Assembly: GCA_051530055.1 (NCBI GenBank) | Contig: CM121341.1 | Coordinates: 124,001 to 188,000 of the forward strand | DNA from: Neoechinorhynchus agilis | Taxonomy: Eukaryota > Animalia > Acanthocephala | DNA: 64,000 nt | Direction of reading: 5' to 3' | Shown here: piece by piece, positions 1 to 16,000 of the stretch | Position numbering within the stretch: position 1 is the stretch's first letter | How the letters are laid out: the number at the start of each line of letters is the position of its first letter | Position numbers and translations under genes: made by a program | The notes under the pieces: generated by a model | Told to the model about the DNA's origin: nothing | Databases searched by the model: none | What the model saw: only the letters and a program-made list of their open reading frames with translations

Positions 1-1
1 G

Positions 2-845
2 GCTCAACTACGTAATTTAGGGAGCTGGAGGCCAATTACCATAGCATCGTGTCTTCTCAGGATGTTGCACCGAGTCCTTTTAAAGCGATTGAGCGTCTCG
101 TGCCAATTGGACACAGGACAGACGGCAGGTAGCGGATCGGCGTGTCTCGCTAACAATATGATTTTGAGAGGCACCCTTCGGCAATGCAGGTCTAGACGCG
201 TTGGAGTCGCGTTAGCAGTGCTGGATATATCAACGGCCTTCGACAAAGTTAGCCATCTTGCTATAATGCGGGAACTGGATCGACAGTCAGTACCGATATA
301 TCTGAAAAGATACATTGAGAGTTCTCTCCGGGATTCCTTTACAAGGCTACACTTTCCAAATCAGAGGCCGTCAGAGCAAATTGCCTTAAAGAGAGGCGTC
401 AAACAAGGCGACCCGTTATCTCCGCTCTTATTCGCCCTTGCTCTGGAGGAAACACTAAGGAAAATAGGCGCGCTTAGCGAGGATCTGGAAATCGACGGAT
501 TAAGGATTGGCCACCTCACATACGCGGACGATATTTTGTTGGTCAGAGACCCAACTTCAGAACAAACTCGATGTTGCAGTCACGGAACTGCGAAACATCG
601 GGTTGTCCTTGAACCCAGCAAAGTGTGTCTCGTATAGCCAAAGATTCCGTCAAGGCTCCATGATTATAGACGCGAATCCGGTAGTCACCATATCGAACGT
701 TAAATTGGGCAATGTCCTTGATGGGGATCCGGTCAAATACTTAGGCGGAAGACCCTGGGCGGTGTCCCGCAAGGAAGAATTTATTGATAAAATTGCCAGC
801 GCGTTTACGGCAACGAAAATAGCGGGTCTTTTCCCAACTCAAGCG
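2..845 (+). pseudogene. Fragment of a non-LTR retrotransposon reverse transcriptase (R2-group, lineage distinct from the 2047-6996 element), frameshifted; runs off the window start
   Basis: Reads WRPITIAS...LDISTAFDKVSH...RGVKQGDPLSP...HLTYADDILL, then after a frameshift at ~548 LQNKLD...NPAKC...VKYLGG...TQA. Collinear with the RT of ORF 3689-6838. Comparison with the 7722-7860 homolog indicates an ~8-nt deletion at ~548. Confidence 0.93.
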
Positions 846-849
846 GGCT

Positions 850-2046
850 GCTGCTGAGTGTCGGGTGTAAATGCGATGTCACCAAGTGGGCCATTTTTGG
901 TAAGCAGAACTGGCGATGTGGGATGAACCAAACGTTGAGCTAGGGTGCCAAAAGTGCCTCTCATGAGATACCATGAAAGGTGTCAGTCGATATTGACAGC
1001 AGGACGGTGGCATCAGAAGTAGGAATCCGCTAAGGAGTGTGTAAAAACTCACCTGCCGAATCGACTGGCTCTGAAAATGGATGGCGCTGGAGACGTATAT
1101 CCATGCTTGACCGTCGATGCCAGACACAAATGTACAAATGGCTTGACGTGTAGAAGGGCGTATGCGGTGGTGTTGAAACTTGCACCGTGAGGTGGAGTGA
1201 AGCCGCCGCTAGTGCAGATCTTGGTGGTAGTAGCAAGTATTCAAATGAGAGCATTGAAGACTGAAGTGGAGAAAGGTTCCATGTGAACAACATTTGGACA
1301 TGGATCAGCCGATCCTAAGAAAACGTGCAAATTCGGGATTAAGCGTGTTGCATTGCGCAATACAATCGAAAGGGAATTGGGTTAATATTTCCGAGCCAGG
1401 ATGCGGTTTATGCTTGATCTATTCAGATGTTCTTCTTGGGCAGATGATGTTCAGCATAAGTGGTGACACGAGCAATCCCAGAGAATAACTATACGAAGTC
1501 TGGAGAAGAGTTTTCTCTTCTTTGTTAGGAACTTTATCCCGGGAATTAGATCATCTGTTGATAGCGTACGCGTTCCGTAATGCAGCGCGATTCCTGCGAT
1601 GTACCGAGCGCTTAGTATTGTCCTTGAAAATCTGGGTGCGAGAATATTCAGACCGTACCTGTTCGTACTGATTTCCGCAGCAGGTCTCCAAGGTGAGTAG
1701 CCTCTAGTCGATTGGGAAACGTAGGCAAGGGAAGTCGGCAAATTAGATCCGTAACTTCGGAAAAAGGATTGGCTCTACAAGCTGAGCTGGCCGGGCTGTC
1801 GCGAGAAGCGGTATGTTGTCGACTCTTGGATCTGTCTCAGTTATTTGCTGTTGCGAAAGAGTCGATTTCGAGGACGGAACTTGGTGCTGCGTACTGTGGG
1901 CAGCGATAGCTATGCTCCGCGTTTGTTCGACGTATCCAGACGGGTACGCTCGCTTCTTGCGCGGGGATCCGATCAGCGTTAAACAGCTGGCCTAGAACTG
2001 GTATGGACAAGGGGAATCCAACTGTTTAATTAAAACAAAGCATTGC
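850..2046 (+). rRNA. 28S: 28S (LSU) rRNA gene fragment, diverged; 5' end joined to an RT fragment, 3' end truncated at the retroelement
   Basis: Conserved LSU blocks: AGTGGGCCATTTTTGGTAAGCAGAACTGGCG (~885), GACAGCAGGACGGTGG, GCAGATCTTGGTGGTAGTAGCAA, CCGCAGCAGGTCTCCAAGGTGA, GATCCGTAACTTCGG, ACTGTTTAATTAAAACAAAGCATTGC (ends 2046). The 5' boundary is approximate. Confidence 0.96.
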
Positions 2047-2520
2047 ACGTAACTTCCATCTATCATCAAAAGATATCAACATCTGCCGCTTTCAAATTTT
2101 AAAAAGATCTTCGCCTGACTTAAAATCTTAAGCGACAAGTATGTGAAGTGCTTTTGATAGAGCGTCACGTGGTTATCTAACTCGACGGGGTCTGAGCTCT
2201 TCTGTCTACGTCGTTCGCAGAGCACAGCCCTTTTAACCCGTGCCAATTCACGCTCCCAAAAGTTATCTTTATTTTGAATTTAAAGTCGCTCCTGGGGGTT
2301 ATCGACACCCCTAAACACGTTTTTTAAGTCTCCGCGAGATTTGCTTCGTCTTTCAGCGAGACGCAGTTTTTTTCGACGCTTCTTCCGCGTTTCTGTGACG
2401 TGATTTAGAAATTTTATTTACGTATTTTATCAATTTAATAGGGTCTCCGATAGGAATTTCTCGTAGATTTTAGATAATTAATAACAGTTTTATTTTCTTT
2501 TAAGCTTTTATCCAGTTCTT
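2047..2520 (+). other. Putative 5' UTR of the retroelement
   Basis: Non-rRNA sequence between the 28S breakpoint and the first ATG of the zinc-finger ORF. AT-rich, with a GC-richer, self-complementary island at ~2160-2255. Confidence 0.65.
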
Positions 2521-3279
2521 ATGAGTTCCTCAATAGACCGCGAGACGCCTGCTCTCTCGATGATCGAAGTTGGTTATCCGATCACGGCCGAAAATAACTT
2601 AGAATGTATTCTGTGCAATTTTCAGGCTATGGGCAGAACGAGGCACAGTCTCTTTCTTGAGCATATGAGGGGGAGTCATGCGCGAGGGCCAATCTCATGG
2701 GTGTGTAAAATCTGCAACAATTTTCGGAGCGCAGCCCCAGGAAGCGTTGGAGCGCATACTCGCCAATGCAAGAGTCTTAATGTCTCTGCATATAGAGAGA
2801 TCTTGAGAAAAATTGAGGAGGGTAACAAAACCTTTCCAGTGCTCAATGAGGCCGCAATTACCTACGCAGGGGGAACTTCACCAGCCGTCTGCCCGAGCTG
2901 CGATGAAAAATTTTTGGGTCGTGGGCAGTACAATTCTCTGGAAAACCACCTTAGAGTATGCCATTTGGCGAAGAGTATCACGTATATTTGCGCCCTCTGT
3001 AACACCCACTCCACTGCTTCGATCTACTCCGCCAGATCGCATTACTCACAGTGCTTTAAGCGAGTTAAGGTAAAAGACGCGGACACTGGGGTAACAACAA
3101 GTGAAGCCCAAGAAAGGAAAGACGGTTTATTTTGCGATAGGACCACTTACTGTGTCAGTGAGCACGCGGAAAGACCGGATATTTATGCCCCCGAAGAGGA
3201 TGCCGTTGTCTCTCGTAGTGCAAGCCTCCCCAGCACGGAAAAAACACATTTATTCCGGGGACGGGACTCATTTGTCTGA
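2521..3279 (+). CDS. Retroelement N-terminal zinc-finger ORF (252 aa; CCHH-CCHC-CCHH-CCHC)
   Basis: C29-x2-C-x15-H-x4-H53, C62-x2-C-x13-H-x3-C83, C124-x2-C-x15-H-x4-H148, C157-x2-C-x13-H-x3-C178. It may be a separate ORF1 or the disrupted N-terminus of a single ORF. Confidence 0.85.
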   Translation: MSSSIDRETPALSMIEVGYPITAENNLECILCNFQAMGRTRHSLFLEHMRGSHARGPISWVCKICNNFRSAAPGSVGAHTRQCKSLNVSAYREILRKIEEGNKTFPVLNEAAITYAGGTSPAVCPSCDEKFLGRGQYNSLENHLRVCHLAKSITYICALCNTHSTASIYSARSHYSQCFKRVKVKDADTGVTTSEAQERKDGLFCDRTTYCVSEHAERPDIYAPEEDAVVSRSASLPSTEKTHLFRGRDSFV

Positions 3280-3688
3280 CGGTCGCGACCCCAGTACACA
3301 TGCGCGCGATGCTGCTGAGCAGGGTGTGGGGAGCCGTGAGCTGTCCTGCCCGCCGGTCGGCTTTGTGCCGTCTGCAGGTCACCTTCGTGAGTTCGTAGAG
3401 GTGCTGCAAGGTCCTACTTCCACTTCGCCACACGAGTCGCGGAATATCTAGAGTCGACTTTTCGATTCTGTCGCGTCTGCAGCGCACATTTGGCATACTT
3501 CGGTGGCTCAAACCTTGAATTCGGAGCACCCGCGGAGGCGCGGGAGCGTCCTAGCAGATGCAGAGTCCTGGGCCGCCTACCCTACCACGAGTGTTCTCGG
3601 CGGACTCAGGAGGGTGTCCCGAGTTAGTTGAGTTGCGAGGGGCGGTAGTTTCTTTGGGTCCAACGAGGGCTTTGAAAACAGTGAAGAG

Positions 3689-6600
3689 TTGTCGACTCCT
3701 TGGGTGCGACGTCCCGATTCTTTGGCGTCCAGTTTTTCGACAGGCGGTACGCTAATTGAACATGGAGAGAGAAATGAATCACAATTTAGTATCGAAGAGG
3801 CTTATGAGGGCGTCGTGAAGTCTCTTAAAAAGAATGGCCTTCACCCCCGATATAGGTTCTATCTGGAAACGGAGCGCAACGTCTTACGCCATTCAGAAGG
3901 ACCGATCGATAAAGGCTTTGTCGAGATGGCTGCTACACGGTATGAAGATTACCTAAGATGCGGACGCAGTAAGGTGAGTCCCGAAGTCTCGAAAGCCAGA
4001 CAAGCCGGCCTTAGAATAATCAAATTGAGAAGAGGTGCAACACAATCGCTTTGCGCGATCGCGTACCATGTCTACCGAAACCCAGCACGATGGAAGAAAG
4101 TCTCTGAAAAATTGGTCAGTGAGATTAACAGTAACATAGGATACTATCGTTTGATAGCTAATAATGTTCCAGACGCCAACATTTCCCTAGAAGACCATCT
4201 GAACGGTTTTCTCTTGGGCAGAGCAATCTCTCCAATTTTCGCTTTGTTTGCTGCCGCATCTGCGTACTCTTGCGATTGGTTGGTCTACAGTCCGGATGAT
4301 CACAAAGTGCGTCGTATCCTCTGTCCGGGAACTGGGGCGAACGTCTTTTGTGTCTGGGCCGACGAAGGCAGTATCTATCCATGCACTCGCTGCCGAGGTC
4401 TGACAAAGGCCCATAATCGAGAGCTTGACAAAAGACGAAACAGAGCACTTTACTTCTCCAATACGTCGAGGCTGGCAAATGAAGTCTTTAAAAGTGCTGA
4501 CAGGGTTAATTGTCCATTGGAGTTCCAAGATACAGTTTCGCACTATCGCAACCTATTTGAAGGTGGTACTTCACTTGACACGTCGCATGGAAGTTCGTGC
4601 ATGACAGATAGGTATCCAGGAGTAGACCCATTTCCACTCGTCTCCGTCGATGAGGTAAAGGAGGCACTCGATAGTATCAAAGCTTCTAGCGCACAAGGTC
4701 CCGACAGAATAAGTATTAGAGACATACGGGCTTTCGACCCTCTTCTCATTGGGATGAACCTTCTATTCAATTATGTGCTACAATGCGGCGAGGCTCCTAA
4801 ATCATGGTTGGAGGCGAAAACAATTTTGATTCCTAAACCAAGTGCTCCTCCCGGAAAGCTACGCACACAAGATGGGTGGCGTCCAATTACCATATCTTCT
4901 ATTCTAATGCGGATATTTCACCGTATTATTTTGAAGAGGATCCGGGCAACGTGCAACATCGATGAGGGCCAAACAGCTTTTGACCCATCAGCCTGTATGG
5001 CCAACCTCCTTGTCCTCAAGTGCTTGCTAAGAGAAAAAAGGAACGCTAAGGAACCTGCGGCAGTGGCCATATTAGATATCAAGAGCGCGTTCGATACCGT
5101 CTCGCACCACGATATTGACGCGGCTCTTCGCTCAAAAGGATGCCCTCGATACTTACATAGATATATTTTGAAGTCATACAGTTCGAGTCGAACAAGAATA
5201 CGAATGAATAACTGCAAACCAAGCGAACCCATAAGTTTTCGAAGAGGAGTTAGGCAGGGAGACCCGCTCTCTCCTTTTGTTTTCGCTTTAGTTCTGGACG
5301 AAGCATTACAGAAAGTCAGACAACTTAACCTTGGAGTTAAACTAAAAACGGACGTTCGTATATCTCATCTGGTATATGCGGACGACATTCTTCTGGTTGC
5401 TGACGACTACCCGAACCTGCAAGGAATGATCGATGTATTACAAGAAACGTTGAGCAAGATGCAACTTATGCTATGCCCAGAAAAGTGCGTTACCTATCGA
5501 CAAACCTTCAAACGCGGCACATTGGTAGTCGATTATAAATCAGAGGTAAGCATTGGGGGCGTTAAATTAGCTACCGTGTTGGAAGGCGATCCCATTAGGT
5601 ACCTCGGGGGAACGCCGTGGAAAGATACTACACTAGAAGAAGCGCTCTTCGAATTGAATAGGCTTTTCGCACAGGTAAAAACTGCTCAGCTCACTAGGAC
5701 GCAAGCAGCTCATTTGCTTAATGATTATGGGGTTCCTCGCTTACTGGGTAGGTTGAACGCTGCTTGGGATGTCTCTGCTACTAGCCTTGCTCGCATAGAC
5801 GAGCAATGGCGCTCAAGAATTAAAAAATTGCTAGACCTACCTCGCTACGTAAATGACGGGGCATTCTATTTGCCTTTATCGAAAGGCGGTTTGGGATTTC
5901 GTTCCATAGCTCATGAAATTAGGAATGCCAGAATTAAAGCAATTCGAGCAGTTTTAAATAAGTACGGAAATCAAGTAGATATGGAAAAAGAGCTCAAATC
6001 ACTTGACATGGGCTCAAACAGTATAAGCATCGATATACGTAAAAATGAGGAACGTAGGGAACTGATCTGTCATGACAGCTTTGCTGAGGACTGCCTAAAA
6101 CATTGGAAGGCTACGACAACCCAAGGAACGGGTATTGAGTGCTTCGCCGGTGGTAAATTCGACCGAAGTTTGATTACGTTTAGACACAGACAGGGATACC
6201 ACAGTTCCTATGTTGAGCAAGTGAAGCTGCGTTTACAACTATTGGAAGTGGGCACCGTTTTAGGTCGGATGGATAAACAGCGCACAAAAGGATGCAGGCA
6301 CTGCACAGCAACGGCAGAGACGTGTGCACATGTACTCAACGCGTGCGATGCATCATCGATTCCTATGACCTGGCGCCACGATAAAGTTCAGGGACGATTA
6401 ATTTGGGATATTAAAAACAAATATGGTACACAGTTTGACGTCTCAAGTGAAAACAGGTTCCACGACAGTGAAGGACAACTATATAAACCTTACCTTATCC
6501 TTCGTCAGCGGGACACCGACAAGGTATACATTCTAGACGTTGCCGTTTATTATGAAACTAGTTTAAAACGTGCCGACGAAGTAATGACTCACAAGGAAGA

Positions 6601-6838
6601 AAAATATAGGTCGATTATATCAAGTGTCGCTGAAAAGTATAAAGTTCCTCAACATAAAGTCTCGACCATAGGCATTGCAGTAGGATCAAGAGGAACATTT
6701 AGTGCGGAACTTTTAAACCGCCTTCGTATACTCTCTCTAGGGCCAAAGACTGCTATCAACATGGCAAGGACGGCGGCGGAACAGTCCATTCGCGTCTTTC
6801 ACGCCTTCTGCGGAAGACGATTTATGCTCAAAAATTGA
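3689..6838 (+). CDS. Retrotransposon polyprotein: OTU-like region, reverse transcriptase, CCHC zinc knuckle and restriction-like endonuclease
   Basis: RT motifs WRPITISS, LDIKSAFDTVSH, RGVRQGDPLSP, HLVYADDILL, RYLGG. Knuckle CRHC-x8-H-x4-C at ~6293-6346. RLE RHD...KPYL...ILDV...KEEKY. The frame is open from 3632. The listed start is TTG, so the real start is uncertain. Confidence 0.95.
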   Translation: MSTPWVRRPDSLASSFSTGGTLIEHGERNESQFSIEEAYEGVVKSLKKNGLHPRYRFYLETERNVLRHSEGPIDKGFVEMAATRYEDYLRCGRSKVSPEVSKARQAGLRIIKLRRGATQSLCAIAYHVYRNPARWKKVSEKLVSEINSNIGYYRLIANNVPDANISLEDHLNGFLLGRAISPIFALFAAASAYSCDWLVYSPDDHKVRRILCPGTGANVFCVWADEGSIYPCTRCRGLTKAHNRELDKRRNRALYFSNTSRLANEVFKSADRVNCPLEFQDTVSHYRNLFEGGTSLDTSHGSSCMTDRYPGVDPFPLVSVDEVKEALDSIKASSAQGPDRISIRDIRAFDPLLIGMNLLFNYVLQCGEAPKSWLEAKTILIPKPSAPPGKLRTQDGWRPITISSILMRIFHRIILKRIRATCNIDEGQTAFDPSACMANLLVLKCLLREKRNAKEPAAVAILDIKSAFDTVSHHDIDAALRSKGCPRYLHRYILKSYSSSRTRIRMNNCKPSEPISFRRGVRQGDPLSPFVFALVLDEALQKVRQLNLGVKLKTDVRISHLVYADDILLVADDYPNLQGMIDVLQETLSKMQLMLCPEKCVTYRQTFKRGTLVVDYKSEVSIGGVKLATVLEGDPIRYLGGTPWKDTTLEEALFELNRLFAQVKTAQLTRTQAAHLLNDYGVPRLLGRLNAAWDVSATSLARIDEQWRSRIKKLLDLPRYVNDGAFYLPLSKGGLGFRSIAHEIRNARIKAIRAVLNKYGNQVDMEKELKSLDMGSNSISIDIRKNEERRELICHDSFAEDCLKHWKATTTQGTGIECFAGGKFDRSLITFRHRQGYHSSYVEQVKLRLQLLEVGTVLGRMDKQRTKGCRHCTATAETCAHVLNACDASSIPMTWRHDKVQGRLIWDIKNKYGTQFDVSSENRFHDSEGQLYKPYLILRQRDTDKVYILDVAVYYETSLKRADEVMTHKEEKYRSIISSVAEKYKVPQHKVSTIGIAVGSRGTFSAELLNRLRILSLGPKTAINMARTAAEQSIRVFHAFCGRRFMLKN
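4006..4385 (+). other. OTU-fold-like (pseudo-protease) domain within the polyprotein
   Basis: GLRIIKLRRGATQSLCAIAYHVY aligns without gaps to the OTU pattern GLKIVEVPGDGNCLFRAVAHQLY. It is followed by a W-containing helix, LEDHL, ALFAAASAYSCDWLVY and VWADEGSIY, in the OTU order. By-eye recognition only. Confidence 0.6.
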
Positions 6839-6996
6839 AAATACCAAGATAAGGAAGGACAGGTAACTATCCTTAAACAAAATATAATAGAGAAGACAAA
6901 TAAGTTGAGCAATAATTAACAACCGGAACTAATAATAATAAAATGATGTCGATTACGAGAAGCTTGTAATTTTTTTTCTTTGAATAAATGTAGCTC
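6839..6996 (+). other. 3' UTR of the retroelement (no poly(A) tract at the junction)
   Basis: AT-rich 158 nt between the stop codon and resumption of 28S. AATAAA at 6983-6988; ends ...GTAGCTC|TAGCCAAATG. Confidence 0.8.
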
Positions 6997-7028
<32 letters not shown>

Positions 7029-7072
7029 TGCATGAATGGATTATTGAGATTCCTACTGTCCCTGTCTGCAGC

Positions 7073-7106
<34 letters not shown>

Positions 7107-7113
7107 GAGTAAC

Positions 7114-7151
<38 letters not shown>

Positions 7152-7248
7152 AGTCTCTGTGAAGAAACATGATGGGCGTAGAATAGGTGGGAGGCCGCGC
7201 CGGTGAAATACCACTACCATCATTGTTTCTTTACTTACTCAGTGATTC
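6997..7248 (+). rRNA. 28S: 28S rRNA fragment starting exactly at the R2 cleavage site; truncated at its 3' end
   Basis: TAGCCAAATGCCTCGTCATCTAATTAGTGACG...AGCGAAACCACAGCCAAGGGAACGGGCTTGG...GAAAGAAGACCCTGTTGAGCTTGACTCTAG...GGTGAAATACCACTAC. Confidence 0.97.
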
Positions 7249-7254
7249 AGGTAG

Positions 7255-7721
7255 CGTTAATTCGCTACCCAAAAATGTTATCATTCAGATACAGACAGGG
7301 CCATCACAGGCAATACACGGAATTGATAAAAATGCGAGCTGAACTTCTAGAGGTTGGTGCCGTTATGGCAAGGATCTCAAACAATAGGACAAAAGCCTGT
7401 CGCCATTGCGCCCATCAAACAGAAACGTTCTTGCACGTAATTAATCAGTGTGACTTCTCGACGGAAGCAATGATTAAAAGACACGACGACGTCGTGAGTC
7501 TTTATAGGCGCACTAAATGCAGTTGAAGCAAAATCCGCCAAAAGAGATTCAATCCGAGGCATCAGTTACACCGTCGATAGAAAAAATCACATTATGGACG
7601 ACGGCGGCAACTTACACAAGTCCGACCTCATTGTTAGGACAAACATAAATGATCGGGTTTATATAGTAGATGTGGCGGTCTACTATGAGACCTCATTGGA
7701 ACGGGCAGCAGTTATGGCGAA
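7255..7721 (+). pseudogene. Retroelement fragment (second lineage): CCHC knuckle plus RLE, frameshifted
   Basis: FRYRQGHHRQYTELIKMRAELLEVG...CRHCAHQTETFLHVINQC...RHD, then in another frame HKSDLIV...YIVDVAVYYETSLERA. Homologous to 6175-6590. Confidence 0.92.
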
Positions 7722-7860
7722 GATGATATTTTGTTAGTCAGTAAGGATAAGGCCGGACTTCAGAATAAGCTCGATGTTGCGGTTACAGAATTGCGAAGCA
7801 TCGGATTGTCCTTCAATCCAGCAAAATGCGTTTCGTACAGCCACAGATTTTGTCAAGGCT
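7722..7860 (+). pseudogene. Short RT fragment (DDILL...NPAKC), close relative of the 2-845 fragment
   Basis: DDILLVSKDKAGLQNKLDVAVTELRSIGLSFNPAKCVSYSHRFCQG. 85/102 nt identical to 555-656 by manual alignment. Confidence 0.92.
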
Positions 7861-8276
7861 TCAAGTCTCGGCCTCAAAATTATAAAGCTAAAGAAAAATT
7901 CAACAATGGTACTGGTGACCGCCGCCTTTCTCGTCCTCGAGAAACCTACACAATGGAGGAGAGTAAAGGACCGCAGCTTGGACCCTGTTTCACTTCATAT
8001 AGTAAAAATGATTCTTGATGCAAATCTCACATTAAATGACACACTGGATGCTACTAAAAATTACAACGAACTATCAGTTCACTTCATCTTGAGGGCCGCA
8101 GCGACTGCCTATCAATGCAATTTTGTCGGGCAAACTCCAAGCGACGATGTTCCTCTTCGAATTCGATCTCGCACAGCCACGAATTCGTCGTTTGGATTAA
8201 TGAGTCAGGTACTTATCCCTGCGAAAGTTCTCGAGGCCTCAAATCAAAGCAGTCACACGACCCTATTAAAAGACGT
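7852..8276 (+). pseudogene. Retroelement fragment carrying the OTU-like region (second lineage), frameshifted near 8180
   Basis: KASSLGLKIIKLKKNSTMVLVTAAFLV...W...DANLTLND...FILRAAATAYQC, then FVVWINESGTYPCESSRGL...KRR. Homologous to KARQAGLRIIKL...DANISLED...FAAASAYSC...FCVWADEGSIYPCTRCRGL...KRR. Confidence 0.88.
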
Positions 8277-8280
8277 TAAC

Positions 8281-8432
8281 CTTCTAAACGACTATGCAAT
8301 TCCATCCTTAATGGTTAAGCTCGAAGCCTCATGCGACATCGCCCCGCTAATCTAGGACGTAAAGACGAGCAATGGAGGTGCAGACTAAAGAAGATTCTTA
8401 AACTTACAAGGAACTTAGGCGAAGGAGCTTTC
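8281..8432 (+). pseudogene. Retroelement fragment from the post-RT (thumb/linker) region, with a stop and a frameshift
   Basis: LLNDYAIPSLMVKLEASCDI...DEQWRCRLKKILKLTRNLGEGAF versus main ORF LLNDYGVPRLLGRLNAAWDV...DEQWRSRIKKLLDLPRYVNDGAF. Confidence 0.88.
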
Positions 8433-8483
8433 GATGAGTGTGAGCTGAGTCTAATCTCTCCAAGCAATGCTTTAGTGTGGTAG

Positions 8484-8669
8484 ATGAATAAAGCAAAAAT
8501 AACTTCCATTCAAAGGTACAGATGCTTTCTGGAGACGGAGAGCGATATCCTCCATCGATCAGAAGGCTCCATTGATAGGGAAAAATACGTTTCCAACAAA
8601 TTACTTACGTTCACAGACGCTCAAAGATGCCTTCATAAGCCCATAGCTCCAAAATCGCTCATTTCATAG
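8484..8669 (+). pseudogene. Retroelement fragment from the region just upstream of the OTU-like domain
   Basis: QRYRCFLETESDILHRSEGSIDR versus main ORF PRYRFYLETERNVLRHSEGPIDK. Confidence 0.82.
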
Positions 8670-10049
8670 GCGAACAAAAAAGAACGATACAGGAACATGG
8701 AGGCAGCTATAGGAAACAGGCAGCAATTTATAATGTGCAGAAAACGAAAGAATTATTGTTTGCGTAATCATTTGGCGCGCGTTTAAATTTTTATTACTGT
8801 TTTTTAATCGAAAAATAATTTATGAGGAGTAACCATGTAATGTGCTTTTCGAAGGTCTTTTTAAATCAACTGCGATTTTAATCGTCTTCTTAAGTGCTTT
8901 TTAATGTTCGTTATTGAATTGACGGAAAGTTTTAAGTTTCTCAAATGAAAATTTACAATCGATTTTTAAAGCTGGTAGAATAAAAAATTCAATCAGATGA
9001 ATCGATTAGTGCCGTAATTAGATACGTTAAAAACCACTACGTTTTGAAAATGGATACAGCATCCAAAAATTTGCAACCTATCTTTGCCGTGGAGAATGAC
9101 AAGCAGCCACCTTATCTTAAAAAGGTTCACTTAATCTCGGAGAAGAGATCCCAGTAAGGGCTAGGCATAGCATATGAGCTACGACGTGAATGAGTGCTTA
9201 TAAATGACGTCAGTCGAAGCTCTTGGAACCCGCTAAGAATTGATGACTAGATTTGTTGTCGACGTTTCGTGAAATTAACTACATCATTGAAAGTTAAAAA
9301 GTTCTGAACATTAGCTGATTGAACGTGTTTTGTTTCGATTGAATTGTATCATAAAAAGAGCCTTGTGACGCTAGCAAAATTACATTGCAGCACGTTAAAT
9401 TTTGAGACAAACTACCTTGATTATTGATATAAAAACGTCAGCGAATTTAAGATCAAATTAACTTTTCTAGATCTACTTTTGACGCTAAGTCCACCTGCAA
9501 TAACAATTTTAGGTTGCTTTTTAAACTTTTACACTTAGTTTAAGGATTAAAGTTCATAAAAGACACCTGAATTAAATCTGTGGTACTCGTAAGTTGTTAT
9601 GAAATGATAAAACATTTTGAGCATATCTAAATCGCTGATTTCAATGGTGTTGACCAATTTTAATGAACCTTGCAAATTTTGTGATCTTTCACTCGTGACC
9701 ATTTACCAAATATGATAATGCAATATCCGATTCAAATATTTAAGCTGTAGTTTAGAGAGTCAGTAAGTTTAGTACATCTTAACGCGCTGATTCCAAATCT
9801 GTATCATGATTTGCGATAGCTTTAATTGTTCTTGAGTTATTCGTTGTTCAATTTTGAGACAAACAACCTTGATTATTGATATTAAAACGCAGATCAATTT
9901 AAGATCAAATTAACTTTTCTACATTTACATTTGACGCTGAATTCACCTGCAATAACAGCTTAATGTGGCTTTTTAAACTTTTGCACTTAGTTTAAGGTTA
10001 CGAAATGCAAAAACATTTTGAGCATATCTAATGCGCTGATTTCAATGGT

Positions 10050-13000
10050 GTTATCTGATTTTAATGATTCTTGCAAATTTAGTGATCTTTCACTCTTGTG
10101 AATATTAGCAAAATATGACAATGCAATTTCCGATGCGAATATTACGGCTGTAGTGTAAGGAATCAGCTAATTTTGTACATCTTAACGCGCTGATTCCAAA
10201 CCTGTTTTTGGATTTGCGATAGCTATCATGGTTCTTGAGTTATTTGTTGTTACATTTTGAGACCAACTAAATTGATTATTCATATTAAAACATCAATCAA
10301 TTTAAGATCAAATTAACTTTTCTAGATATACTTTTGACGCTGAATTCACCTGCAATTACGGTTTGATGTTACTTGTTAGACTTCGACACTTAGTTTCAGG
10401 ATTGAAGTTGATAAAAGACTCCTGAATTAAATCTGTGGTGCTCGAAAGTTGTTACGAAATACAAAAACATTTTGAGCATATCTAATGCGCTGATGTCAAT
10501 GGAGTTATCTGATTTTAATGATTCTTGCAAATTTAGTGATCTTTCACTCTTGTGAATATTGGCAAAATATAACAATGCGATTTCCGATGCGAATATAACA
10601 GCTGTAGTGTACGGAATCAGCTAATTTAGTACATCTTAACGCGCTGATTCCAAATCTGTTTTCGTATTTGCGATAGCTGTCATGGTTCTTGAGTTATTGG
10701 TTGTTAGATTTTGAGACAAACTACCTTGATTATTGATATTAAAACATCAATCAATTTAAGATCAAATAAACTTTTCTATATCTACTTTTGACGCTGAATT
10801 CACCTGCAATAACGGTTTGATGTTACTTGTTAAATTTTAACACTAAGTTTTAGGATTGAAGTTCATAAAAGACACCTAAATTAAATCTGTGGTGCACGAA
10901 AGTCGCTACGTAAAGAAAAAACATGTTGAGCATATCTGATGCGGTGATTTCAATTGTGTTATCTAATTTTCATGAATCTTGCAAATGTAGTGATCTTTCA
11001 CTCTTATGAATATTGACAAAATATGATAATGCGATTTCCGGCGCGAATATTACAGCTGTAGTGTACCGAATCAGCTAATTTAGTGCACCTTAACGCGCTG
11101 ATTCCAAATCTGTTTTTGGATTTGCGATAGCTATCATGGTTCTTGAGTTATTTGTTGTTACATTTTGAGACCAACTACCTTGATTATTGATATTAAAACA
11201 TCAATCAATTTAAGATCAAATTAACTTTTCAAGATATACCTTTTACGCTGAATTCACCTGAAATTACGGTTTGATGTCACTTGTTAAATTTTGACACTTA
11301 GTTTAAGGATTGAAGTTGATAAAAGACACCTCAGTTAAATCTGTGGTGCTCGAAAGTTGTTACGAAATAGAAAAACATTTTGAGCATATATGATGCGCTG
11401 ATTTCAATGGTGTTATCTAATTTTAATGAATCTTGCAAATTTGGTTATTTTTCTCTCTTGTGAATATTGTCAAAATATGACAATGCGATTTCCGATGCGA
11501 ATATTACAGCCGTAGTGTACGGAATCAGCTAATTTAGTACATCTTAACGCGCTGATTCCATATCTGTTTTTGGATTTGCGATAGCTATTATGGTTCTTGA
11601 GTTATTTGTTGTTACATTTTGAGACCAACTACCCTGATTATTGATATTAAAACATAAATCAATTTAAGATCGAATTAACTTTTCTAGATCTACTTTTCAC
11701 GCTGAATTCACCTGATATTACGGTTTGATGCTACTTGTTAAATTTGGCACTAAGTTTTAGGATTGAAGTTGATAAAAGACACCTGAATTAAATCTGTGGT
11801 GCTCGAAAGTTGTTACGAAATACAAAATCATTTTGAGCATATTCAATGCGCTGATTTCAATGGTGTTATCTGATTTTAATGATTCTTGCAAATTTAGTGA
11901 TCTTTCACTCTTGTGAATATTGGCAAAATATGGTAATGCGATTTTTGATGCGAATATTACAGCTGAAGTGTACGGAATCAGCTAGTTTAGTACATCTTAA
12001 CGCGCTGATTCCTAATCAGTTTTCGGATTTCCGATGGCTGTCATGTTTCTTGAGTTATTTCTTGTTACATTTTGAGACCAACTACCTTGATTATTGATAT
12101 TAAAACATCAATCAATTTAAGATCAAATTAGTTTTTCTAGATCTACTTTTGACGCTGAATCCACCTGAAATTACGGTTTGATGTTACTTGTTAAATTTTT
12201 ACACTTAGTTTAAGGATTGAAGTTCATAAAAGACACCTCAGTTAAATCTGTGGTGCTCGAAAGTTGCTACGAAATAGAAAAACATTTTGAGCATATCTGA
12301 TGCGCTGATTTCAATTGTGTTATCATATTTTAACGATTCTTGCAAATTTAGTGGTCTTTCACTCTTGTTAATATTGGCAAAATAAAATAATGCGATTTCC
12401 TATGCGAATATTACAGCCGTAGTGTACCGAATCAGCTAATTTAGTGCACCTTAACGCGCTGATTCCAAATCTGTTTTTGGATTTGCAATAGCTATCATGG
12501 TTCTTGAGTTATTTTTTGTTAGATTTTTAGACCAACTACCTTGATTATTGATATTAAAGCATCAATCAATTTAAGATCAAATTAACTTTTCTAGATTTAC
12601 TTTTGAAGCTGAATTCACCTGCAATAACGGTTTGATGTTGCTTGTTAAATTTTGACACTTAGTATTAGGAATGAAGTTCATAAAAGACACCTCAGTTAAA
12701 TCTGTTGTGCTCGAAAGTTGTTACGAAATTCAAAAACATTTTGAGCATATCTTATGCGCTGATTTCAATGGTGCTATCTGATTTTAATGATTCTTGCAAA
12801 TTTAGTGGTCTTTCACTCTTGTTAATATTGGCAAAATAAAATGATGCGATTTCCGATGCGAATATTACAGCTGTGGTGTATGGAATCAGCTAATGCAGTA
12901 CATCTTAACGCGCTGATTCCAAATCTGTTTTCGGATTTGCGATAGCTATCATGGTTCTTGAGTTATTTGTTGTTACATTTTGAGACCAACTACCTGAATT

Positions 13001-16000
13001 ATTGATATTAAAACATCAATCAATTTAAGATCAAATTAACTTTTCTAGATCTACTTTTCACGCTTTATTCACCTGCAATTACGGTTTGATGCTTCTTGTT
13101 AAATTTTGACACTTAGTTTTAGGATTGTAGTTCATTAAACAAACCTCAGTTAAATCTGTTGTGCTCGAAAGTTGCTACGAAATAGAAAAACATTTTGAGC
13201 ACATCTGATGCGCTGATTTCAATGGTTTTATCTAATTTTAATGAATCTTGCAATTTTGGTGATTTTTCTCTCTTGTGAATATTGGCAAAATAATACAATG
13301 CGATTTCCGATTCGAATATTACAGCTGTAGTGTACGGAATCAGCTAATTTAGTACATCTTAACGCGTTGATTCCAAATCTGTTTTCGGATTTGCGATAGC
13401 TATCATGGTTCTTGAGTTACTTGTTGTTACATTTTGAGACCAACTACCTTGATTATTGATATTAAAACATCAATCAATTCAAGATCAAATTAAATTTTCT
13501 AGATCTACCTTTGACGCTGAATTAACCTGAAATAACGGTTTGATGTTAATTGTTAAATTTTTACACTTAGTTTTAGGATTGAAGTTCATAAAAGACAGCT
13601 AAGTTAAATCTGTTGTGCTCGAAAGTAGTTACGAAATAGTAAAACATTTTGAGCATATCTAATGCGCTGATTTCAATGGTGTTATCTTATTTTAATGATT
13701 CTTGCAAATTTAGTGATTTTTCCCTCTTGTGAATATTGGCAAAATATGATAATGCGATTTCCGATGCGAATATTACGGCTGTGGTGTACGGAATCAGCTA
13801 ATTTAGTACATCTTAACGCGCTGATTCCAAATCGCTTTTCGGATTCTCGATAGCTGTCATGGTTCTTGAGTTATCTGTTGTAACATTTTGAGACCAACTA
13901 CCTTGATTATTGATATGAAAACATCAATCAATTTTAGATATAATTAACTTTTCTAGATCTACTTTTTACGCTGAATTCACCTGCAACAACGGTTTGATGT
14001 TGCTTGTTAAATTTTGACACTTAGTTTTAGGATTGAAGTTCATAAAAGACAGCTAAGTTAAATCTGTTGTGCTCGAAAGCAGTTACGAAATAGTAAAACA
14101 TTTTGAGCATATCTAATGCGCTGATTTCAATGGTGTTATCTGATTTTAATGATTCTTGCAAATTTAGTGATTTTTCCCTCTTGTGAATATTGGCAAAATA
14201 TGATAATGCGATTTCCGATGCGAATATTACGGCTGTAGTGTACGGAATCAGCCAATTTAGTACATCTTAACGCGCTGATTCCAAATCTGTTTTCGGATTC
14301 TCGATAGCTATCATGGTTCTTGAGTTATTTGTTGTTACATTTTGAGACCAACTACCTTGATTATTGTTATTAAAAAATCAATCAATTTAAGATATAATTA
14401 ACTTTTCTAGATCTACTTTTGACGCTGAATTCACCTGCAATAACGGTTTGATGTTGCTTGTTAAATTTTGACACTTAGTTTTAGGATTAAAGTTCATAAA
14501 AGACAGCTAAGTTAAATCTGTTGTGCTCGAAAGTAGCTACGAAATAGTAAAACATTTTGAGCATATCTAATGCGCTGATTTCAATGGTGTTATCTGATTT
14601 TAATGATTCTTGCAAATTTAGTGATTTTTCCCTCTTGTGAATATTGGCAAAATATGCTAATGCGATTTCCGATGCGAATATTACGGCTGTAGTGTACGGA
14701 ATCAGCTAATTTAGTACATCTTAACGCGCTGATTCCATATCTTTTTTCGGATTCTCGATAGCTGTCATGGTTCTTGTGTTATTTGTTGTTACATTTTGAG
14801 ACCAACTACCTTGATTATTGATATTAAAAAATCAATCAATTAAAGATATAATTAACTTTTCTAGATCTACTTTTGACGCTGAATTCACCTGCAATAACGG
14901 TTTGATGTTGCTTGTTAAATTTTGACACTTAGTTTTAGGATTGAAGTTCATAAAAGACAGCTAAGTTAAATCTGTTGTGCTCGAAAGTAGTTACGAAATA
15001 GTAAAACATTTTGAGCATATCTAATGCGCTGATATCAATGGTGTAATCTGATTTTAATGATTCTTGCAAATTTAGTTTTTTTTTCCCTCTTGTGAATATT
15101 GGCAAAATATGATAATGCGATTTTCGATGCGAATATTAAAGCTGTAGTGTACGGAATCAGCTAATTTAGTACATCTTAACGCGCTGATTTTAAATCTATT
15201 TTCGGATTCTCGATAGCTGTCATGGTTCTTGAGTTATTTGTTGTAACATTTTGAGACCAACTACCTTGATTATTGATATGAAAACATCAATCAATTTAAG
15301 ATATAATTAACTTTTCTAGATCTTCTTTTGACGCTGAATTCACCTGCAATAACGGTTTGATCTTGCACTTGTAAAATTTTGACACTTAGTTTTAGGATTG
15401 AAGTTCATAAAAGACCGCTAAGTCAAATCTGTTGTGCTCGAAAGTAGTTACGAAATAGTAAAACATTTTGAGCATATCTAATGCGCTGATTTCAATGGTG
15501 TTATCTGATTTTAATGAGTCTTGCAAGTTTAGTGATTTTTCATTCTTGTGAATATTGGCAAAATATGATAATGCGATTTCCGATGCGAATGTTACGGCTG
15601 TAGTGTACGCAATAAGCTAATTTAGTACATTTTAACGCGCTGATTCCAAATCTGTTTTCGGATTCTCGATAGCTGTCATGGTTCTTGTGTTATTTGTTGT
15701 TACATTTTGAGACCAACTACCTTGATTATTGATATTAAAAAATCAATCAATTTAAGATATAATTAACTTTTCTAGATCTACTTTTTACGCTAAATTCACC
15801 TGCAATAACGGTTCGATGTTGCTTGTTAAATTTTGACACTTAGTTTTAGGATTGAAGTTCATAAAAGACAGCTAAGTTAAATCTGTTGTGCTCAAAAGTA
15901 GTTACGAAATAGTAAAACATTTTGAGCATATCTAATGCGCTGATTTCAATGGTGTTATCATATTTTAATGATTCTTGCAAATTTAGTGATTTTTCCCTCC

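Follow-up and report, generated by a model that had tools for sequence, protein, structure and literature searches.

An OTU-like domain without catalytic residues in R2 retrotransposons of acanthocephalans

What is the role of a protease-like domain that lacks the residues of proteolysis and stands in front of the reverse transcriptase (RT) of a retrotransposon inserted in 28S ribosomal RNA genes? The question is raised by a stretch of 64,000 nucleotides (nt) from the acanthocephalan Neoechinorhynchus agilis (assembly GCA_051530055.1, contig CM121341.1, positions 124,001 to 188,000 of the forward strand), referred to below as the window, which contains an R2 element (copy A) and pieces of a second, diverged R2 lineage (lineage B). 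R2 serves as the principal model of target-primed reverse transcription, and efforts to engineer it for gene insertion are under way; its zinc fingers and Myb domain are taken as defining. An earlier note, made from the letters of the window alone, had described a catalytically dead OTU-like domain at 4006-4385 in copy A. Our analysis makes it very probable that the acanthocephalan R2 open reading frame (ORF) contains an integral OTU-fold domain without the catalytic triad, while the function of this domain can be proposed only tentatively.

The boundaries given in the earlier note were recovered in the ORF at 3689-6838, in which the region begins with GLRIIKL at amino acid (aa) 107 (nt 4007) and ends with ...GSIYPC at aa 232 (nt 4384). 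The open part of copy A contains the following features, with the OTU-like domain referred to as the pseudo-OTU.

3689..6838, + strand: open part of the R2 ORF, 1049 aa, in the order helical extension, pseudo-OTU, NTE-1, RT, thumb, CCHC knuckle and restriction-like endonuclease (RLE)
3809..4003, + strand: helical extension before the OTU core (LHPRY...YxxYL), with conserved columns in the family alignment and AlphaFold2 helices of pLDDT 62-75
4004..4396, + strand: predicted pseudo-OTU core, aa 106-236, from the profile, AlphaFold2/Foldseek and hhalign analyses
4433..4489, + strand: NTE-1-type motif RRNRALYFSNTSRLANEVF, immediately C-terminal to the pseudo-OTU; residue 344 (RFQRLFYLDRGKLAK) opens the alignment with 9nl3_A
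4829..5608, + strand: RT domain, with YADD at 5375-5386 (Pfam RVT_1, E=1.1e-33, aa 381-640)
6293..6556, + strand: CCHC knuckle (6293-6346) and RLE core, from the alignment to solved R2 proteins

The profile, AlphaFold and Foldseek comparisons supported the proposed OTU fold. A profile of 17 family sequences (alignment A1) identified human OTUD5 as the top match in the PDB (E=0.0055, about 100 aligned residues), and hhalign of A1 against an alignment of OTUD5, OTUD1 and OTUD3 (A2) gave a probability of 84% (E=7.3e-6). The AlphaFold2 model obtained with A1 and without templates had a pLDDT of 84, with the core above 90. In the Foldseek comparison of this model with the PDB, the best 50 matches were all OTU domains, headed by OTUD3 (E=1.7e-6, TM score 0.79 per target) and followed by OTUD5, OTUD1, OTUD2, yeast Otu1, viral OTUs and A20. 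OTU proteins were again retrieved from the viral structures in BFVD. Since the profile search of the PDB, the profile-profile alignment and the structure comparisons in two libraries agree, the domain is predicted to adopt the OTU fold. The relationship was not visible from single sequences: the window protein had no match to Pfam OTU, phmmer against the PDB returned none, the best E-value of Pfam OTU (PF02338) with individual members was 0.13 (one of 17), the single-sequence AlphaFold2 model was poor (pLDDT 41), and the sequence identity to OTUs is 11-16%.

The best structural matches in BFVD also included, beside viral OTU enzymes, the baculovirus VP80/P87 capsid proteins and an iridovirus "virion core protein". 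These may be further non-enzymatic OTU folds in nucleic-acid-associated structural proteins.

The catalytic positions were examined in these alignments. RRGATQSLCAIAY aligned without gaps to KEDGACLFRAVAD over the Cys-loop and helix, which is the part of the OTU N-terminal motif for which a gapless alignment had been claimed, and one gap of 3+3 residues followed further on. The register of the Cys-loop helix was identical in the profile-PDB and the hhalign alignments, and both placed Gln119 (4043-4045) at the position of the catalytic Cys, as previously read, with Gly116 at the loop Asp. In the relatives, Leu or Met takes the place of the Cys, and Gly, Ser or Thr that of the loop Asp. The C-terminal hairpin VFCVWADEGSIYPC corresponds to IRVSYHRNIHYNSV. 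Its His position (4370-4375) is ambiguous by one residue, being Ile229 in the register of the earlier note and Ser228 in the greedy hhalign alignment. Thus, the reported substitution of His-Tyr by Ile-Tyr holds in that the His is missing in either register, with an uncertainty of one position as to the residue that replaces it.

The same pattern was observed across the family. None of the 17 sequences checked has a His at the His position or an Asp or Asn two residues on, in either register. Including the locus on N. agilis chromosome CM121342.1 (L006), the Cys position is occupied by Q/L/M and the His position by I/L/V/C/S/T, and no member has a His, Asp or Asn in the x-[SGN]-[ILVC]-[YFL]-P-C strand. 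The Pro-Cys pair of this last strand (4379-4384 in copy A) is conserved in nearly all sequences that extend to it (Pro in 14 of 14 and Cys in 13 of 15, where only fragment rows differ). It does not vary among the nine full-domain sequences of alignment A3 and supplies the sole conserved Cys of the domain. Judged by the catalytic Cys and by the His with its Asp or Asn, the domain is not expected to be an active OTU deubiquitinase. The lineage-B fragment noted earlier at 7852-8276 contains the same region, 30% identical to copy A and likewise devoid of the Cys and His. It reads GLKIIKLKKNSTMVL at 7870-7914 and VVWINESGTYPC at 8187-8222. The Cys position lies in NSTMVL, and the His position, reached after a frameshift of 1 nt near 8190, in ESGTYPC.

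We searched for relatives to see how widely the domain occurs. When 1.84 billion representative proteins were searched by phmmer for the pseudo-OTU, 17 matches were obtained. One of them, an ORF of tandem repeats from a wasp (P0009), was rejected as a false positive of summed repeats; the others belong to N. agilis, Pomphorhynchus laevis, two NCBI assemblies and two Logan read sets. A word-indexed protein search with the domain returned only P0001, an N. agilis hypothetical protein that is 99% identical to the N-terminal part of copy A. With the full ORF this search returned two matches, of which P0021 was set aside as a different RLE element without a pseudo-OTU, and with A1 it returned nothing. 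No match was obtained in a prokaryotic contig collection, nor in metagenomes with a degenerate DNA pattern of NTE-1.

At least six to eight R2 lineages coexist in the ribosomal DNA (rDNA) and rDNA-derived junk of the N. agilis genome (P0002-P0008, P0010, P0015, window copies A and B, L006), and their mutual identity in the pseudo-OTU domain is only 30-49%.

The loss of the triad is family-wide and not a result of decay, because three intact full-length ORFs also lack it (P0012 of 1177 aa, P0017 of 1492 aa, and the ORF at 12458-16417 of L006, which has 1319 aa and lies within a 28S gene) and because the proportion of nonsynonymous differences (pN) is far below the saturated proportion of synonymous differences (pS). 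The claim of a catalytically dead domain common to diverged lineages is borne out by these ORFs, by copies A and B and by the other relatives; among the 17 sequences collected, none retains the Cys or His, and no intact member with a DGNC...HY triad was found. Because the synonymous sites are saturated, a proper dN/dS could not be computed and pN was compared with pS instead. Between lineages, pN was 0.45-0.48 in the domain versus 0.39-0.41 in NTE plus RT, and pS was saturated at 0.77-0.85. The domain can be aligned with few gaps across two acanthocephalan classes, whereas the linker upstream of it cannot be aligned. The domain is therefore kept by purifying selection that is a little weaker than in the RT. 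Among the structured regions of the protein it is the least conserved, with a mean pairwise identity of 0.24 versus 0.38 for the RT. Conservation within it is found at the hydrophobic positions that define the fold and in the NP and PC motifs. The net charge is +2 to +5 and the pI 8.4-9.1 in most members, versus -1 to -9 in OTUD5, OTUD1 and OTUD3.

The protein that carries the domain resembles R2 proteins from NTE-1 onward and differs from them in the part upstream. The RT-RLE part is most similar in the PDB to lineage-A R2 proteins (9nl3; R2Tg, 9dou; E=7e-77), followed by R2Bm (4e-43) and LINE-1 ORF2p (1e-15). The NTE-1 motif is the most conserved stretch of A1 and A3, and similarity to the solved R2 proteins starts there (RNRALYF onward). 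The segments upstream of the open part of copy A are as follows.

2521..3279, + strand: N-terminal zinc-finger segment in frame 1, with two tandem CCHH+CCHC pairs and no Myb after them
2605-2679 and 2704-2769, + strand: CCHH+CCHC pair 1, from the ORF translation
2890-2964 and 2989-3054, + strand: CCHH+CCHC pair 2, from the ORF translation
3254..3667, + strand: damaged linker, from the alignment and three-frame translation against the sister copy in L001

The two finger pairs represent an internal duplication (29% identity over 55 aa, E=6e-10). In P0017 the pairs align weakly to ZnF3:2 of R2Tg, and two pairs are also present in a P. laevis-like element (L002) when it is read upstream of the called start. 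The linker of copy A is damaged by a 1-bp insertion near 3255, a stop codon at 3449-3451 and a 176-bp stretch at 3492-3667 that contains a second stop and is not found in L001, the N. agilis contig that encodes P0001. In L001 the ORF is continuous from the fingers into the OTU-like region (P0001, 491 aa). The "KPD" of the endonuclease is KPY in copy A (6485-6493), whereas the Pro-Asp is kept in the three intact relatives; together with the frameshift and stops, this marks copy A as inactive.

The fingers are followed by an acidic, proline-rich linker, the helical extension, the pseudo-OTU core and NTE-1. No Myb was detected with Pfam at E<=1 in five full-length relatives and the window ORFs, although a very divergent Myb could escape sequence methods. 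In P0012 the stretch that runs from the fingers into the beginning of the domain is acidic, rich in Pro and without Trp. Based on the lack of a detectable Myb and on the order fingers, linker, domain and NTE-1, the pseudo-OTU seems to occupy the place of ZnF1, Myb and spacer in canonical R2. We considered the helical region before the core as a Myb remnant and rejected this, since AlphaFold2 predicts two long helices and there was no match to Myb; we treat it as a probable extension of the OTU-like domain. The missing Myb is a point absent from the earlier note.

The insertion site agrees with the assignment to R2. The following features surround copy A.

about 868..2046, + strand: 28S rRNA gene fragment upstream of copy A (Rfam LSU_rRNA_eukarya)
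2047..6996, + strand: R2 element copy A, 4950 bp, at the canonical 28S R2 site and decaying, from its 3' junction and from lineage-A R2 proteins as the best PDB matches to its RT-RLE part
6997..7245, + strand: 28S rRNA, restarting exactly at the R2 site, from the junction sequence and Rfam

The 3' junction of copy A reads ...aataaatgtagctc|TAGCCAAATGCCTCGTCATC at 6997, which confirms the 28S-targeting element recognized previously, and TAGCCAAATGCCTCGTCATC, the canonical R2 target, is present only once in the window. In comparison with an uninterrupted 28S sequence (L006 7885-8009), the upstream 28S fragment stops at ...AAAACAAAGCATTGC, about 110 bp before the R2 site, and thus the 5' junction of copy A has suffered a deletion. 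No HDV-like ribozyme, R2 ribozyme or 3'UTR element was matched by Rfam at E<=1 in 1950-7100, in which the 5' junction carries a deletion, and R2 ribozymes are often missed by Rfam models.

Four copies of the family adjoin TAGC[C/G]AAATGCC at the 28S R2 site. The insertion site is ...TTAAGG|TAGCCAAATGCC, with 3' junctions at TAGCCAAATGCC at 6997 in the window and at 11745 and 16592 in L006, where two other pseudo-OTU R2 lineages have precise 3' junctions inside one 28S gene. The element in L002 has the same precise 3' junction, TAGCGAAATGCC, and 5' junctions at or adjoining the R2 site were found in L006 and in a P. laevis locus (L005). Judged from these junctions and the protein similarity, the elements are genuine R2.

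In the 28S gene of L006 (7989-16611), the two pseudo-OTU R2 lineages are arranged in tandem, with a 93-bp repeat of 28S sequence between them that begins at the R2 site (11745-11838, and again from 16592). The repeat may be a long target duplication, as in rotifer R9, or the product of a nested or tandem insertion. The ORF of the upstream element (P0004) starts at an ATG within the 28S sequence AACTATGACT at 8001-8010, just before the R2 site. It thus reads through the 5' junction without interruption, consistent with a 28S co-transcript as the template of translation.

To what extent is this architecture known from other elements? The closest relatives are lineage-A R2 elements (R2Tg of zebra finch, 9dou; 9nl3/9nl2), which share the 28S site TTAAGG|TAGCCAAATGCC, a single ORF with NTE-1, RT, thumb, CCHC knuckle and PD-(D/E)xK endonuclease, and CCHH+CCHC pairs of ZnF3:2 type, and which gave the best sequence match (E about 1e-76, versus 4e-43 for the lineage-D R2Bm). 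The acanthocephalan family differs in its duplicated finger pair, in the lack of a detectable Myb, and in having a 130-aa pseudo-OTU with a 65-aa helical extension before NTE-1. The protease domains of NeSL and Utopia have been described as cysteine proteases, whereas the acanthocephalan domain lacks the triad. In a survey of R2 from 2026, a Myb after ZnF1 is the hallmark of R2 (PMC13188248), and this survey and a review list only combinations of fingers and Myb, with no OTU or protease domain and neither Acanthocephala nor Rotifera among the phyla with R2 (PMC13188248, PMC13580325). The host phylum is thus not included in the R2 inventories (PMC13580325), and the earlier statement that no R2-site element of this architecture is known is in line with these large recent surveys. 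No R2 with a pseudo-OTU and without Myb was found in the literature, with Repbase reports and subscription journals outside the coverage. The elements represent a new form of a known element type, of which a prior description is possible.

Protease folds for ubiquitin-like modifiers are found in other mobile elements. NeSL and Utopia-1_TSP carry Ulp1 domains (PMC4640811), and these RLE retrotransposons resemble the acanthocephalan elements in having an N-terminal fold of the papain superfamily (PMC4640811). They differ in that the domain is Ulp1/C48 there and OTU/C85 here, where Foldseek matched OTU and not Ulp1, and in targeting spliced-leader or U2 genes instead of the 28S R2 site; the RT here groups with R2. 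Helitrons and Ginger1 have captured OTU-family domains (PMC2836005), but these are DNA transposons with domains that match Pfam OTU (pfam02338), whereas the domain described here is located in a retrotransposon, is too diverged for Pfam and lacks the catalytic residues. The closest fold and profile matches are the cellular enzymes OTUD3, OTUD5/DUBA and OTUD1, with which it shares the xLxFRxxA motif of the Cys-loop helix and the helix before the central strand (AAAxxY versus QAMAEMY). In contrast to these enzymes, the domain has Gln, Leu or Met for Cys, Ile, Leu, Val, Ser or Thr for His, and Gly, Ser or Thr for the loop Asp, is basic instead of acidic, and is embedded in a retrotransposon protein. 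A cellular parallel is OTULINL/FAM105A, whose OTU fold has a disrupted triad and whose role is non-catalytic, probably via protein-protein interaction (PMC7862380), although it belongs to the unrelated OTULIN-like subfamily, is a protein of the endoplasmic reticulum membrane, keeps His residues and has no link to mobile elements. R9 of bdelloid rotifers is an R2-derived, 28S-specific element from the same superphylum, Syndermata (PMC5035012); it uses a different 28S site, and the 93-bp repeat in L006 recalls its long target duplication. No R9 homologue of the pseudo-OTU was retrieved by phmmer from the 1.84 billion representative proteins, R9 itself not having been looked at.

We tentatively favour the explanation that the domain is a non-enzymatic structural or nucleic-acid-contacting adaptor of the R2 ribonucleoprotein that derives from a captured OTU protease, with a probability of roughly 0.4. 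An OTU protease would have been acquired by an ancestral R2, comparable to the OTU captures of Helitrons and Ginger1 and the Ulp1 captures of NeSL and Utopia. The captured domain would later have lost catalysis and would now serve as a rigid adaptor or nucleic-acid-contacting module, which may position the finger modules on the 28S target or contact RNA and thus substitute in part for the lost Myb and spacer. This explanation is ranked first because of where the domain lies, because the Myb is missing, because aliphatic residues would fill the cleft, and because the charge has shifted to basic. A bolder version, in which the protease fold has become a recognition or positioning module that replaces Myb and reads the 28S target together with the duplicated ZnF3:2 fingers, seems doubtful to us. 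Several points weigh against the adaptor role. The OTU fold is not an established binder of nucleic acids. The charge shift is modest, with two members being neutral, and the absence of Myb rests on sequence methods that can miss a divergent Myb. Furthermore, the third finger could be a homologue of ZnF1, and the duplicated ZnF3:2 pairs alone might supply target recognition, with the domain having another role.

Second after the adaptor we place the possibility that the domain is a reader of ubiquitin or ubiquitin-like modifiers, although we consider this unlikely. A dead OTU that keeps the S1 surface could tether the R2 protein to ubiquitylated or SUMOylated chromatin or repair factors at the rDNA, or shield it from degradation, without cleavage. 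Ubiquitin-like modifiers are the usual ligands of the OTU fold, the best structural matches are all deubiquitinases, several of them solved with ubiquitin or ISG15, and the recurrent carriage of OTU and Ulp1 by transposons suggests a link between transposition and ubiquitin or SUMO (PMC2836005, PMC4640811). However, each of the three triad residues and the loop Asp has been exchanged, in most cases for bulky aliphatics that would fill the cleft for the ubiquitin tail, and the OTU-class pseudo-deubiquitinase OTULINL/FAM105A binds no ubiquitin (PMC7862380).

It is improbable that the domain is a functionless relic, a decaying leftover that acts as a mere spacer of roughly the right length. Such a relic would agree with the low identity of the domain relative to the RT and with the damage in both window copies, but not with a pN far below the saturated pS, nor with the conservation of the fold-defining hydrophobics and the NP and PC motifs. 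In addition, the co-variation in just 17 sequences suffices for a confident AlphaFold2 fold, and the domain persists in two acanthocephalan classes, with three or more intact ORFs containing it, while the neighbouring true linker has diverged past alignment.

Even less probable is a cryptic hydrolase that uses other residues, such as the Cys of the Pro-Cys pair in the last strand. This Cys is conserved in 13 of 15 sequences and lies 3-4 residues after the His position, and some "pseudo-deubiquitinases" were later found to be active (USP53/54, PMC12037411). Yet it has no conserved His, Asp or Asn partner, since besides the Asn-Pro pair only one Asp (11 of 15) and one Ser (12 of 16) are near-invariant among the other polar residues, and the canonical nucleophile helix begins with Leu or Met. 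The least probable explanation, a chance or convergent resemblance without homology to OTU, would account for the failure of the single-sequence searches and model and for the low identity, but is contradicted by the agreement of the three independent lines of evidence and by the shared register of the Cys-loop helix.

The rest of the window places copy A at the margin of an rDNA array. The remaining features are the following.

1..860, + strand: lineage-B R2-like RT fragment joined to internal 28S sequence (ORFs 62-637 and 507-857; RVT_1, E=3.1e-16), matching the lineage-B piece at 7731-7850
7260..8355, + strand: scrambled, dead lineage-B pieces, from the ORFs; L001 has the same arrangement at 13188-14757 with 98% identity
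7263-7526, + strand: lineage-B CCHC/RLE piece, from the ORFs
7731-7850, + strand: C-terminal end of the lineage-B RT, from the ORFs
7870-8252, + strand: lineage-B pseudo-OTU, frameshifted near 8190, with Met in place of the Cys and Thr-Tyr at the His position
within 7260..8355, + strand: lineage-B thumb piece, from the ORFs

In window 1-880, the lineage-B RT fragment is fused to internal 28S at about position 1100 of the Rfam model, far from the R2 site, a pattern that seems to indicate rearrangement or recombination in the region of the rDNA edge. Scrambled and inverted rRNA pieces are present also in L001 and L005. L001 shares most of window 847-9400 at 96-100% identity, with the blocks rearranged, as well as the downstream satellite. 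This AT-rich satellite of 454 bp forms a single array at about 9400-64000 (also L001 18000-21476), with about 120 copies of about 93% identity and some variant units of 403-413 bp, and directly flanks the decayed rDNA and R2 junk.

The acanthocephalan elements extend R2 to Acanthocephala, with many lineages coexisting in one genome. Their exact specificity for the R2 site without a recognisable Myb suggests that target recognition in R2 can be rebuilt from other parts. They add a retrotransposon case to the recurrent, unexplained capture of ubiquitin and SUMO protease folds by mobile elements, and since catalysis appears to be dispensable here, the possible roles of such captured domains become fewer. 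If the domain were indeed a module that replaces Myb, the OTU fold would have been repurposed for sequence-specific targeting of a retrotransposon, and R2 would have swapped its DNA-binding hardware while keeping its site, which would bear on the re-engineering of R2 for gene insertion.

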